A DNA stretch of 64,000 bases, taken from the NCBI GenBank assembly GCA_965637545.1, contig OZ281496.1, forward strand, positions 22,940,001-23,004,000, written 5' to 3'. Positions 32,986-63,228 of the stretch are shown piece after piece. This stretch comes from Phallusia mammillata (lineage: Eukaryota). Below the pieces are notes generated by a model. The model was given only the letters and a program-made list of their open reading frames with translations. It did not search any database and was not told the DNA's origin. The position numbers and the translations under genes are program-made. Within the stretch, counting starts at the first letter, position 1; each line of letters starts with the position of its first letter.

Positions 32986-35392
32986 ATGTTAGCTGTCGAC
33001 TCAGCACAAGCAGCAAGCTGGATGCCCGTGCCTTATCCTTCAAGCGGCATGGTCCCAAGTAATCCTCATTTGCCACCACCGCCAATGGCTTCATCAGGAG
33101 TTCCATCCAGTATGACAGGAGACATCAAACCATACATCACGGATTCGATGGGAATTGCCGGACAAATGACGCATCTTTCCCCGCCGGTTTCGCATCACCA
33201 CAACCCGGGCCAGAATCAGAACAACAACAATTCGTCGGCAAACTCCAAAGCCGCACAGGAGCAAAGAGTCAAGCGGCCAATGAACGCCTTCATGGTAAGT
33301 GAAATACAGTAGCATAACCTTGCTTGAATTAACATTTATAAATGTCTGATATTCAAATTGGCCTGTTGAAGACGGACTTAACGGCAATTCGACAATAAAT
33401 TTTACGACGCAGCGTACAAACATCGAGTTCGAGCGAATTTCGTCGCGCAAAGCGATAAAATTCCTCGTCTGGCAGTTAATATTCGTCCTTGACGTAATAC
33501 GGTCGTAAATCGACCTATCCCAGCGATGCCGAGGCACCGTGGGGTTTTTAACTTGTGTTAAAACGATAGACAGTTTATTTAATTATTGACGCACCGCATT
33601 CTATTTGCCTGGGACGGGGTGACACTACAAGCAATTATAATTTCTGTTACAGCCGCAAATTCTTTCGCAAAATTGCAATGGAGAATGCAAAAACACATGC
33701 ATTTTTGCACACTGTAGATTTTATTTATAAGCGCAATTTTTGGCCCCGCTCCTGCGTTATTGTAAAGATGGAAAACCACTTCGGGTATAACTGTTAAAAA
33801 ATTCAGCTTCCAAATATGTTTGCGTCAGTTCGTCTCACTTAGGGCCACAAAGCTAGCTGGGATAATGATGGTCAGCGGCGAAATTTGCGTTGACCCAGAA
33901 AAAGACTAAATATCGCCATTACGAATTCACCAAGTGTGACGCCACAATAGGCATGACGACGACTCGACGAACGCTCGCATTAATACCAAGCGATTCCAAA
34001 TAAGTTTGCAAAGTGTCCCAGCCGCTGGTTGTGGATTGCGCCGGGGGAAACATTAATTTAGCATTTTTTGGCGCTTCTGTGTATTGGCCACGCGGGTCGC
34101 GCAATTGAGGAGAGCGCACTAATCCGCCATTTTGTCTGAACTTGCGGACAAACCGGCGCCGTCGTTCATCGCCTTGCCCGCTTCCACATTGGCTTTATTA
34201 AAAAATAACGCAAAGCATTTCCGAGGATTTGGGCCTGTTCAATCAAGATCTGCAGGTGTAAGCCGCCTTTTGTTCCAACTCGCGCGGAAGCATCGAGACA
34301 GGCACTTATGTAACAATAGCGCGTCTCCAGCGACTTAATTGTTTGCCAATTCGATACAGTTAGATTCGTCGAACGCGACGCGGCAATTGCTACTTCTTGA
34401 AACTTCTGTAACTACGTGGAACATTTAAGTGAACTCGCTGTTTTTTCTGTAAGGTTTGGTCAAGAGGACAACGCCGTAAGATGGCACAAGAAAACCCAAA
34501 AATGCACAACTCCGAAATCTCAAAACGCCTCGGAGCCGAATGGAAAACCCTTTCCGATACCGACAAACGCCCATTCATCGATGAAGCCAAACGCCTTCGC
34601 GCTTTGCACATGAAGGAGCACCCCGACTACAAGTACCGACCCAGACGCAAAAACAAGCCAATCCTTAAGAAGGACAAATTCCAGATGGGCCCCGGCGTTG
34701 GAATGATGCAAGGCAGCAACCCAGCAGGTCTTCCAGGATCCAACCGAAGCCACATTTCCCCAGGCCCAATTGATTATTCACAGCTTAACAGCTACTACAA
34801 CCACCAGATGATCGGCTCCGAACCTCAAATGAGTCCCTACGGTAGCAGCGCACCACACTCGTTCCCTTCACACCCAGGAATTGCAAACGGTGCAGCAGCT
34901 TCTCAACGTTACGAACCGATGTCGATGTACTACCCAGCTTACAGTGCCGCGCCAGCAGCTCTTCCAAGTATGAGTTCACTCACTAGCCAGCACAACGGCT
35001 ATGCCCAGGCACCTTACTCTGTGGGAACATCGCCAGCATACAGCCTGGCACAACCGCACACCCCAACCAACTCTATTCATAGCATCACCGGATCTCACCA
35101 TAGTAGCAGCGGTGTGCACTCGCCAGCCAACACCAGCCCCGGTGCATCATCCGTTACTTCAGCGCCGCCCTCATCAGGAGGCAGCCCAAGTCACCAGTCA
35201 ATGCTGCCTCCAGCTGGAAGCCATCACGCCCTCCACCAGATGTACGTTCAACATATGAATGAGAATCAAAACGCTGCTTTGGCAAATGATCCCGAGTCGC
35301 CAGGAATGCGTCTTCAGTCGACAAGCCACTACCAGGCCGCCACGTCGGTTGGTCATGTCCCGATGGCAATGCACATGCCACAAAGCATGTAA
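32986..35392 (+). CDS. SoxB1: SoxB1 (Sox1/2/3) HMG-box transcription factor, 415 aa, two coding exons
   Basis: Exon 1 (32986-33294) ends [10 protein letters not shown]|GTAAGT. A phase-0 intron spans 33295-34453. Exon 2 (34454-35392) begins [31 protein letters not shown]...[21 protein letters not shown], the group B HMG box and group B homology. The ~90-aa N-terminal extension, the [11 protein letters not shown] segment and the RLQSTSHYQ...HVPMAMHM C-terminus resemble Sox1/2/3 rather than SoxB2. Confidence 0.96.
33295..34453 (+). promoter_or_regulatory. SoxB1 HMG-box intron containing an enhancer-like block
   Basis: GC-richer than the MCO introns. Overlapping Otx-type TAATCC (34120-34125) and YY1-type CCGCCATTTTG (34124-34134), plus a Sox-type AACAAT near 34313. 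Function is inferred from motifs only. Confidence 0.35.
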
Positions 35393-36935
35393 GTAGGCGA
35401 AGGAAGTGCTAAGAACTGTATATGCATAGCACCAAGGTGAACAGCAAAGGGGCAAGTACAGCTGTAGTAGACTTGGGCCAGGGCTGGCGGGTTTTCGGTT
35501 CTCAGCCCTGGGCAAAACGCCAACCTATTGACCACGCAGCAAAAACGCAAAACCTAGCAAAAAATCCTATCCCTGGTACCAACAACTGTGAGTTAAATCG
35601 AATGTAAATACACGAGATAATATTAAACTTTATTGCTCCCAGGCTCAGCAGTGCTGGCCTAGCGCGCTCTACATAAATGATATGTCAACTTGTACATAGC
35701 ATGCTGTTTAAATGATTAATTAAAGCATGATTTGCAACATCAGTCTTTAATGTTGGACTGATTGCGACCCCTTTGTGCCTTTTTGAGTAGCTGTAGTGTA
35801 TTGATTTACTAAAATGCGGCAGAAATTAAGACTCATTGCAAACGTGATATGATGTTTTTTTACACAAACGCTTGTTTCACTCGACGATTTCGTATTTATT
35901 GCTTTTTACCATTTACGTTTTGTCATGTTGCATTAAACGGAAAGCGATTTTTTCCACATAAGCTGTCTGCCACTGTCCAAGGCACCACTATATTGCAAAA
36001 GAGCAGATTAAAGATGATTTCTGCAGGATTTTGTCTTGTAAACACATACACATATTGTTCTCGAAGTTAAATGTATGATGTTACCAACTCAATTTTCGTT
36101 TCTGTTGGTTTCGAATAGTATCACGGCTATTATAATTTTTGTCGCTTTTTTACTTTACATCAACAGCACAAGTCTTCACTATTAATATTGCATTTGTCGA
36201 ACGCCCATTCAATCTTAACACACACGCCAAATCTTCAATTACCAAATCAGGCAAAATTGTTGTAACTGCAATGATGCAATTGCAAACGCGTACCTTCACA
36301 ACACACACTGGCTTCAACTAATCGTTTATTTATTCAAAACTCACTGTACCGCAACAAGCGAGACGTTTTGCGTCCCCTTTTGATTAAAACGTACTCATAT
36401 GTATTTGCATTGCTTTCGCCTATCACCATTTTGTTCAAGCAAAAACAATTTTGGAGCACATTTTTAAAGCAACCATCCTTCACACATTTGCAAGCAGAAA
36501 AAATGCATTTTATTCGGGCCTAACTAATTTCACATGACCACAAATTGTTTTTTAGCACTGTTTAATATGACTTGTTTTTTTTGCTGCGTTTTGTTTCTCG
36601 TAATCTAATCCGCTGGTTTTTTGTTGAGCTACGAAGCATGTTCTAATAGTTTTGGATATTGCATCGGATTGTTTTTTGCTCCCCTGATGTCGTTCTTTAC
36701 TTGTTGTGTCGCTGTTGAACAGCTTAGTGACTCTTGTAGTGATGGAATAAACAAACCAGAAAACAAACACAACACTTCTGATTTGATATAATTTTTAACA
36801 AAACAGTGAAAGAAGGAAAAAAGAAAGAAGGAAAAGCATTTTGTAAGACTCATGAACGGTCAGATTAAAATGATACAAGAGGAAAAACTAGCCTGCACCA
36901 AGCAAAACGTTTTCAGAATTTCAAAAACTCCTAAA

Positions 36936-61500: not shown

Positions 61501-63228
61501 TTATTTGAAGTTACAGTGGTTGCAATTGTATGTAGTGTTTTTAAACATTTTTTATTTGTACTTTTATTAATAAGTGTTCTTCAATGGGCTGAAATGTGAT
61601 CTTCAATGCTTGATTTTGTCTTTCCCAAAAAATCACACTTCTCACTTTAAGCTGATTACCTCCATTATTCATTTCTCTGGTTTCAGGATAAAAAGTCTTT
61701 TCCATATATGACTGTGGTTTTCCAATTTTTTTCTTTAATTTTTGCTTACCTGAACTTCTTGCATTACTAATCTGGGAAATTGATTCAGAGGCTCAATGCA
61801 TTGCAACAAATTTCAAAATTTTTACACAAACTTTTACTCTTTCATGAACTGCATCTTTCAAGCAATCTTGAAACTTACCTTCATTATACCAGCTATGTTC
61901 CTACTTCACAATTTGGCAACTAATTTTACTCTTAACACTATTTTATGACTACTAGGAATCTGCCTAAAAATACAGAAAAACTTTTTCTATCAGTCACCAG
62001 CACCCACTTTAGTTTATTATGTAGCAAACTTTACCGTGTATTTCAGCACAAAAAAGTTTTCGTTTACGACCTACAAGTAGAACTCAACTAAACAACAAAA
62101 TCAGTCCTTTAACACAGTAATCAACTCTAAAGAACTGATTTTGTAACTGAACATAGCTTTATCTCACACCATATTTTGCTAAATGATGCTGTAAAATTCT
62201 GGCAATTTTAGTTTCTTGCACAAACTAGTACAAAATTAGCGAAAAGTGGTGCAGTCCAAATATCTGAAACAATATTACGTACCTGAATTAAAGCACCAAT
62301 CATAATATTCTGAAGCATAAGAAAAAATGAGTCACCCCATGTGCTGCAAAACAGAATTAGATAATATTAAACCATTTATCTAGGCTTTGTAGCTAGAAGA
62401 AAATGTTCTGTTGTGTTAAGTAAGTACCTGAATGGAAAACCTTTAGCAATACTGTATGAAAACATTGAAGTAACAGCGTATAGTTCCAAAAGAAGTGAAG
62501 TAAAGCTAAGACCTTTCGCACTTCCAGCAGATAAAATTTTTTGAATTTGTGGAACCTTGACTAAAAACATCCCAAAATTGACAGTTTACACACTAAAATA
62601 CAAACAAAAAAGCAATAAAATCCTCTTGTATTTCAATTTAAAAATTATGCCTCTGACAAATGTATTTAGGGTTAAATATAAAATCAACAAAGTGCATAAG
62701 CTTTTTTTTACTGCTACTTAATTTCTGTGCAACCAAGATATCATCTTGAGAATAGAAAGTTACTCTTAAACAGTGCCCTCTCTTCGCAATGGGATATATC
62801 AATAACACTTACCCAAAACTGCTCCGGCCACAATCGAATAACCAAGGACTTTGCTAATAAGTGCTGAAAGGCAATCCCCTGAAAAACACAACCATGTTAA
62901 GATGATATGTTAGTTGCTGTATGGTATACGATACTATACGTGCATTTGAGCTGCAACAGATAAAATAAGTCTAAAAACAATCACTTAAATGTTCAGAAAA
63001 AGTTCAGAAAATTTCTATATTGCAGCTACTCAATGCAACACTCACACAATGCAGTAAAGATTGCTCACCTACACAGTAACAAAAACATACAAAGCTCATG
63101 GGCAAACATTTTGGAAACCCACTAAGGAACTTATAATCTCATACCATGGAAGAAATTCAGCTTGTAAAAGAATTCCTCGTAGCATTCTTCTGACATAAGT
63201 GCATTCATGTTTTTCTTTTGCAATTTTC
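52537..63228 (-). CDS. MPDU1: Mannose-P-dolichol utilization defect 1 protein (PQ-loop ER membrane protein)
   Basis: Exons: 63228-63145 ([21 protein letters not shown]; first in-frame ATG at 63208), 62878-62813 ([21 protein letters not shown]), 62560-62428 ([21 protein letters not shown] loop), 62343-62283 ([13 protein letters not shown]), 61487-61344 ([13 protein letters not shown]), 52991-52809 ([35 protein letters not shown]), 52581-52537 ([14 protein letters not shown], KxKxx ER-retrieval end). ATG to stop is 696 nt (231 aa). The true N-terminus is uncertain. Confidence 0.95.

Follow-up and report, generated by a model that had tools for sequence, protein, structure and literature searches.

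Here we analyzed a 64,000-nucleotide stretch of the genome of the tunicate Phallusia mammillata (hereafter the window), which covers positions 22,940,001-23,004,000 of chromosome C3 and contains the neural transcription factor gene SoxB1 and the housekeeping gene MPDU1 as immediate, convergent neighbors. Chromosome C3 is 31.96 Mb long and makes up 13% of the 240-Mb genome. The two genes very likely represent a convergent pair inherited from the common ancestor of tunicates and vertebrates, a pair that jawed vertebrates retain as sox15/sox19-mpdu1 and that is still found in at least three lineages of tunicates. Regulatory DNA located downstream of SoxB1 is the most likely reason that the pair outlasted the scrambling of tunicate genomes, a mechanism that we infer and on which we consider the evidence evenly balanced. 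Taken together, the inherited pair and this account of its retention are the explanation toward which we lean.

The convergent gene pair in Phallusia

SoxB1 is encoded on the plus strand and MPDU1 on the minus strand, with 17,144 bp separating their stop codons. SoxB1 has two exons encoding 415 amino acids, and its GT..AG intron splits the HMG box. MPDU1 has seven GT-AG exons encoding 231 amino acids, with two PQ-loops (exons 3 and 6) that place it in the PQ-loop family. The features are as follows, in positions relative to the window.

32986..33294, plus strand: SoxB1 exon 1, 103 codons, ATG at 32986; ends within the HMG box after ...NAFM, with a GT donor
34454..35392, plus strand: SoxB1 exon 2, with an AG acceptor; remaining HMG box, group-B and SOXp regions, and stop
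35393..52536, no strand: interval between both stops, 17.1 kb, without a recognizable protein gene; its right end is MPDU1 3′ untranslated region
42523..43152, no strand: dispersed repeat of ~620 bp within the interval; present 39 or more times on many chromosomes, with 76-94% identity
52537..52581, minus strand: MPDU1 exon 7, with the stop codon; RNA joint 52581|52809 in four runs
52809..52991, minus strand: MPDU1 exon 6, second PQ-loop (Pfam 4.7e-7); covered by RNA contigs
52992..61343, minus strand: MPDU1 intron 5, 8,352 bp; the remaining MPDU1 introns are ~85-800 bp
61344..61487, minus strand: MPDU1 exon 5, from the gene model; its sequence continues the RNA contigs past 52993
62283..62343, minus strand: MPDU1 exon 4, with GT-AG sites; aligns with Ciona MPDU1
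62428..62560, minus strand: MPDU1 exon 3, first PQ-loop (Pfam 1.2e-9), from the gene model
62813..62878, minus strand: MPDU1 exon 2, from the gene model
63145..63208, minus strand: MPDU1 exon 1, from the gene model, with the start codon; N-terminus aligns with Ciona MPDU1

The UniRef entry "HMG transcription factor SoxB1, Phallusia mammillata" agrees with the exon 2 translation of SoxB1 at every residue (100% identity), and its length of 415 amino acids equals that of the spliced model. Exon 2 matches the Pfam families HMG_box (1e-20) and SOXp (1.2e-6), indicating a Sox-type HMG box, and among named proteins its best matches are to SOX1/2/3 and SoxB1 from several phyla, which assigns the gene to group B1 rather than B2. 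A counterpart of exon 1 was also found 5′ of exon 2 in Ciona, Clavelina, and a tunicate represented by an ENA contig. The sole other close Sox gene in the genome is a second SoxB gene on C5 with B2-like features. The HMG-box intron of this SoxB2-type gene (C5:20706640) follows ...NSEISK, a position unlike that of SoxB1. In the lizard Pogona vitticeps, the HMG box of a sox15-like gene aligns uninterrupted over the tunicate SoxB1 intron site; this vertebrate gene thus lacks the tunicate intron.

The closest full-length relatives of the Phallusia MPDU1 protein bear the name MPDU1, and exon 6 is 70-80% identical to tunicate and vertebrate MPDU1. In a tree, the protein is sister to the vertebrate MPDU1 clade (support 91/94), and it aligns end to end with MPDU1 from Ciona, amphioxus, fish, and lizard, as expected of an orthologue. 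RNA contigs from four runs of four studies carry the joint between exons 7 and 6, and exon 6 continues directly into exon 5. The RNA-contig comparison covered 6 kb, to the right of the interval from 35.4 to 52.4 kb. The MPDU1 3′ untranslated region extends at least to about 51.86 kb (~51857-52536), as one RNA contig reaches 543 nt to the left of 52400. An earlier reading of this DNA, made from the sequence only, had named the gene correctly and set its end at 63228; the start codon was found 20 bases inward, at 63208.

Open reading frames of at least 100 amino acids between the two stop codons did not match any Pfam family, and an Rfam search of the whole window gave no match. Repeat searches scored the best 39-40 candidates, most of which belonged to one or two dispersed repeats; the repeat at 42523-43152 plays no part in the constraint argument below. 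Together, the gene models and the Pfam-negative reading frames confirm that SoxB1 and MPDU1 are immediate convergent neighbors with no recognizable gene between them, as the sequence-only reading had described.

The pair in other tunicates, vertebrates and outgroups

In Ciona intestinalis (AP043567.1), SoxB1 (1,982,422-1,984,938, plus strand) and MPDU1 (2,004,854-2,019,979, minus strand) are 19.9 kb apart, and no gene is present in this interval in the NCBI annotation. Gene order in Ciona had been suggested earlier as a check on the linkage, and the same convergent arrangement was recovered. A third tunicate, represented by the 1.26-Mb ENA contig ctg14360l, carries SoxB1 at 483.7-486.5 kb (plus strand) and MPDU1 at 506.4-522.3 kb (minus strand), again ~19.9 kb apart. 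This MPDU1 is complete, with every exon located, and the SoxB1 gene carries the tunicate HMG-box intron. In a separate tree, this SoxB1 belongs to its own fully supported tunicate clade, separate from Ciona, Phallusia, and Clavelina, and four further ENA contigs carry SoxB1 of the same clade. The SoxB1-MPDU1 interval is thus 17-20 kb in all three tunicates. For Clavelina, there was no MPDU1 within the 10-kb flanks of SoxB1 and no Clavelina MPDU1 among the matches; the 10-kb flanks of Ciona SoxB1 also lack MPDU1, as the partner lies 19.9 kb away.

The gene order in Pogona vitticeps is Lamp/CD68, MPDU1 (plus strand), and a convergent HMG-box gene of 255 amino acids 1.8 kb further. In a published survey, sox15 adjoins mpdu1 in mammals, reptiles, amphibians, ray-finned fishes, and elasmobranchs, with fxr2 usually on the opposite side (PMC8244163). 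The lizard locus and the survey support the match to the vertebrate SOX15-MPDU1 arrangement that had been proposed. As in the vertebrate fxr2-sox15-mpdu1 synteny (sox19 in teleosts; PMC8244163), the tunicate pair has a B1-type Sox gene immediately and convergently beside a single-copy MPDU1, and in both cases the Sox gene is an orthologue or pro-orthologue of the SoxB1 set. The tunicate pair differs in having a single unduplicated SoxB1, a spacing of 17-20 kb instead of ~0-2 kb, a giant MPDU1 intron 5, and an FXR gene that in Phallusia is 2.87 Mb off rather than adjoining. A literature search found no paper pairing MPDU1 with sox15, sox19, or microsynteny beyond vertebrates; a broader search was too unspecific to count.

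Because the convergent adjacency is identical in tunicates and vertebrates, the two most likely share an origin before the split of these groups. The arrangement is common to Phallusia, Ciona, the third tunicate, and vertebrates, and an age greater than the tunicate-vertebrate split, as had been claimed, is the most likely one.

A chordate-wide age, which the sequence-only reading had also assumed, is not established. Within outgroup flanks read for 10 kb on each side, the pair was not seen: Branchiostoma belcheri MPDU1 has no HMG box within this distance, and Saccoglossus SoxB1 has no MPDU1 exon. In the annelid Owenia fusiformis the convergent MPDU1 neighbor is POLR2A, and in the brachiopod Lingula the MPDU1 neighbor is an LRR/Roc gene; neither is a Sox gene. 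In Owenia (CAIIXF020000004.1), MPDU1 and POLR2A are immediate neighbors 3.5 kb apart. Mammalian POLR2A is roughly 100 kb from MPDU1, and the proximity in Owenia may be a separate old linkage.

Intron 5, changed flanks and conserved noncoding elements

We propose that SoxB1 regulatory DNA would extend downstream through the 17-20 kb gene-free interval and into the large intron 5 of MPDU1. In that case, any break separating the two genes would deprive SoxB1 of part of its control region, and MPDU1 would be a functionally unrelated bystander. The giant intron, the changed flanks, and a few noncoding matches between genera suggest such a constraint, none of them decisively.

Ciona has an orthologous intron 5 of ~11.6 kb and the ENA tunicate one of ~12.0 kb, whereas those of Owenia, Lingula, and Pogona measure only 0.26-0.85 kb. 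None of MPDU1 exons 1-5 was detected in the 10 kb preceding exon 6 in a fourth, metagenomic tunicate, pointing to an intron 5 of comparable size there. No RNA contigs were found over 53.4-58.4 kb of the Phallusia intron, except for two snippets at 53264-53300 and 56776-56818. These are attributable to two short dispersed repeats (53122-53327 and 56730-56902), which are present in dozens of copies over all chromosomes.

The gene beyond MPDU1 differs between the two genera, with an ephrin-B gene ~4 kb off in Phallusia and an ENTH/ANTH gene 4 kb off in Ciona. The Ciona gene (AP043567.1, upstream of MPDU1) is intronless and encodes 615 amino acids, and no counterpart was found within 100 kb of the Phallusia locus; it may be a retrogene insertion. 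Since these flanks differ, rearrangements have hit the short spacer beyond MPDU1 and not the long one between SoxB1 and MPDU1.

Gene order in ascidians is reported to be frequently scrambled, and noncoding DNA to be unalignable between genera (10.1101/371005). Three short stretches nonetheless match between Phallusia and other tunicates.

54270..54333, no strand: intron-5 element, a CACGTG E-box between two ACGTCAC (CRE-like) words
38918..38978, no strand: short noncoding element with a TTCCGG (ETS-like) core, ~3.5 kb downstream of the SoxB1 stop
25392..25413, no strand: 22-bp stretch 7.6 kb upstream of SoxB1, identical (22/22) to one 8.6 kb upstream of Ciona SoxB1

The intron-5 element is single-copy in the Phallusia genome and matches Ciona intron 5 at a collinear place, with 79.7% identity over 64 bp (54.5 bits, compared with at most 37.4 in 20 shuffles). 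A weak match (E 0.011) occurs in a third species, the metagenomic tunicate, in the same place and orientation, and in all three species the element sits 1.3-2.6 kb upstream of MPDU1 exon 6. No RNA contig from the four runs of four studies covers it. The element downstream of SoxB1 has weaker statistics, with a blastn E of 1.7e-4 against Clavelina and of 0.024 between the Clavelina copy and Ciona. Its alignment across Phallusia, Clavelina, and Ciona contains a near-invariant core of ~20 bp and is collinear, 3.5-4.7 kb past the SoxB1 stop. The 22-bp upstream stretch (blastn E 4.7e-5 in a 10 kb x 10 kb comparison) is a lead only.

These features resemble those of genomic regulatory blocks, in which a developmental target gene and its bystanders are kept together by interspersed enhancers. 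As in such blocks, the neighbor of a developmental transcription factor is an unrelated housekeeping gene with an oversized intron, one flank is poor in genes, and the arrangement has outlasted heavy rearrangement. Here, however, there is a handful of very short conserved pieces, recognized from sequence alone, and the vertebrate counterpart is without the roomy architecture.

Several observations count against regulatory constraint as the reason for retention. The vertebrate pair is ~2 kb apart in Pogona, with small MPDU1 introns, so the roomy tunicate architecture does not look ancestral, and tight packing alone could be the cause of retention in vertebrates. The interval and intron 5 contain dispersed repeats. 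The cross-genus noncoding matches are few and short, and the intron-5 element, the one that is statistically solid, was not found in the ENA tunicate and could equally well serve MPDU1. The earlier claim of a cis-regulatory constraint with MPDU1 as bystander is plausible: in tunicates it gains indirect support from the giant intron, the changed flanks, and the noncoding matches, while the close spacing of the vertebrate pair shows that the architecture is not shared.

The wider neighborhood and competing explanations

We also read the neighborhood for 100 kb to each side of the window and located further relatives of SOX15-linked genes on C3.

248-13245, plus strand: multicopper-oxidase exons (Cu-oxidase_2 and Cu-oxidase_3 matches), upstream of SoxB1
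13996-14460, minus strand: Sulfotransfer_2 exon, upstream of SoxB1
67421-84874 relative to the window (C3:23,007,421-23,024,874), minus strand: ephrin-B-type gene, starting ~4 kb beyond the MPDU1 start and ~32 kb from the SoxB1 stop
C3:24728811-24731468 (24.73 Mb): p53-family gene, multi-exon
C3:25.846-25.853 Mb: single FXR/FMR1 orthologue with Tudor, KH0, and KH exons, on the MPDU1 side at a distance of 2.87 Mb
C3:31282592-31290615 (31.29 Mb): ATP1B (Na/K-ATPase beta)

Another ~17 kb without recognizable genes lies between the upstream sulfotransferase and multicopper-oxidase exons and SoxB1. The ephrin has an ephrin-domain exon (Pfam 1.6e-24) and a further transmembrane/tail exon. It is far closer to ephrin-B than to ephrin-A structures (2e-16 versus 6e-6), with ephrin-B2/B1/B3 as the best PDB matches, and is the sole ephrin outside a four-gene cluster at C1:25.48-25.52 Mb. 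Ephrin exons were not found in the readable DNA of the ENA tunicate or Ciona locus. The FXR gene was located by a profile search of the Phallusia genome with KH_9; the FXMRP1_C_core and Tudor_FRX1 profiles gave no match. The sequence-only reading had suggested looking for an FMR1/FXR gene on the same scaffold. Such a gene is indeed on C3, but it does not adjoin the Sox gene as in the vertebrate fxr2-sox15-mpdu1 order; the sulfotransferase and multicopper oxidases occupy the upstream side of Phallusia SoxB1. Other features observed were a second, single-exon p53-family copy at C1:28.58 Mb, a tandem array of a ~1.54-kb unit with identical long open frames on both strands (C3:22840001-22853000, -100 to -87 kb relative to the window), and Ty3/gypsy-like open reading frames (integrase, reverse transcriptase, gag-like) on the minus strand at window-relative 132129-135204 (C3:23.072-23.075 Mb).

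SOX2-FXR1, SOX3-FMR1, and SOX15-FXR2 form the vertebrate SoxB1/FXR paralogon. Like this paralogon, Phallusia has SoxB1 and its single FXR/FMR1 gene on one chromosome, and the ephrin-B, p53-family, and ATP1B genes, whose relatives lie beside vertebrate SOX15, are on it as well. The mammalian relatives TP53, FXR2, and ATP1B2 cluster with SOX15, and a 138-kb association region on sheep chromosome 11 has MPDU1, SOX15, FXR2, ATP1B2, TP53, and EFNB3 among its listed genes (PMC12294545). Compared with the paralogon, the Phallusia linkage is loose (~32 kb to 8 Mb) and its order is unlike that of mammals. LAMP and POLR2A, neighbors of MPDU1/SOX15 in vertebrates and in the mammalian cluster, have their Phallusia counterparts on C5 and not C3 (POLR2A at C5:5971581, a LAMP-like cluster at C5:16530244-16544641), which speaks against an intact segment. 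A loose chromosome-level linkage thus surrounds the tight two-gene core of SoxB1 and MPDU1. Because ephrin-B, p53-family, FXR, and ATP1B genes share C3, the pair appears to belong to a loosened remnant of the ancestral stretch from which human 17p13.1 arose. In a broader version, selection would have maintained a regulatory block centered on the two genes from a time before tunicates and vertebrates split, with SoxB1 enhancers lying in MPDU1 intron 5, among them the CRE/E-box element that can still be aligned between ascidian genera. SoxB1-MPDU1-ephrinB...p53...FXR...ATP1B would then be a remnant of the pre-duplication segment from which human 17p13.1 and its paralogous regions derive. This version is conceivable, and we hold it only tentatively.

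If SoxB1 and MPDU1 had become adjacent independently in tunicates and vertebrates, the missing adjacency in the readable DNA of amphioxus, Saccoglossus, Owenia, and Lingula would be expected, and these outgroups indeed provide no confirmation of an older pair. We estimate the chance that one named gene immediately adjoins another at ~2 in 15-20 thousand genes, or ~1e-4, which rises to ~1e-3 by our own estimate when ~8 candidate neighbors of the four vertebrate SoxB1 ohnologues are allowed for. This low chance and the same convergent orientation in both sister groups make an independent origin very unlikely, and the relatives of ephrin-B (~32 kb from the SoxB1 stop), p53, FXR, and ATP1B on the same chromosome argue further against it. 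Coincidence is, in our view, highly improbable.

An inherited pair could also have been kept by inertia, if rearrangements simply never separated the genes and the size of the interval and intron reflected lineage-specific padding without a role for SoxB1. Hundreds of ancient animal gene pairs persist without a known cause. In vertebrates the spacing is tiny (1.8 kb in Pogona), such that few breaks would be expected there, and in tunicates the interval and intron carry dispersed repeats and, in one species, a reverse-transcriptase fragment. Padding does not readily explain why the interval and intron are of similar size in three tunicates with a roughly twofold difference in genome size (the Ciona genome is about half the size of that of Phallusia). 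Breaks did occur in the far shorter space on the other side of MPDU1, and the single-copy intron-5 element is conserved between genera whose noncoding DNA is otherwise unalignable. We therefore consider inertia rather unlikely. Less probable still is that intron 5 and its element keep the region intact by serving MPDU1 or an unannotated product, such as an internal promoter, a noncoding RNA, or a nested gene. The element is promoter-like in its CRE-like words and E-box, and its position in three species, 1.3-2.6 kb before exon 6, would suit this role; yet no RNA contig covers it in the four runs, Rfam has no match in the window, the intron reading frames have no Pfam match, and the Ciona annotation shows no nested gene. 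Such a role would also leave the continued adjacency of SoxB1 unexplained.

Sox15/19 is already accepted as one of the four SoxB1 ohnologues that vertebrates have (PMC8244163). The tunicate outgroup agrees with this view of Sox15 origin and adds support, leaving it unchanged. It also provides outgroup evidence that the sox15/sox19 locus, and not sox1, sox2, or sox3, keeps the original neighbor of the ancestral SoxB1. Tunicate genomes have lost most ancestral gene order, which makes a pair retained in both sea squirts and mammals a helpful reference point. In the compact genomes of Ciona and Phallusia, SoxB1 enhancers could be sought in the ~30 kb of noncoding DNA whose size has been conserved. 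The idea is testable there by electroporation, and the two or three short elements conserved between genera are the first candidate enhancers.

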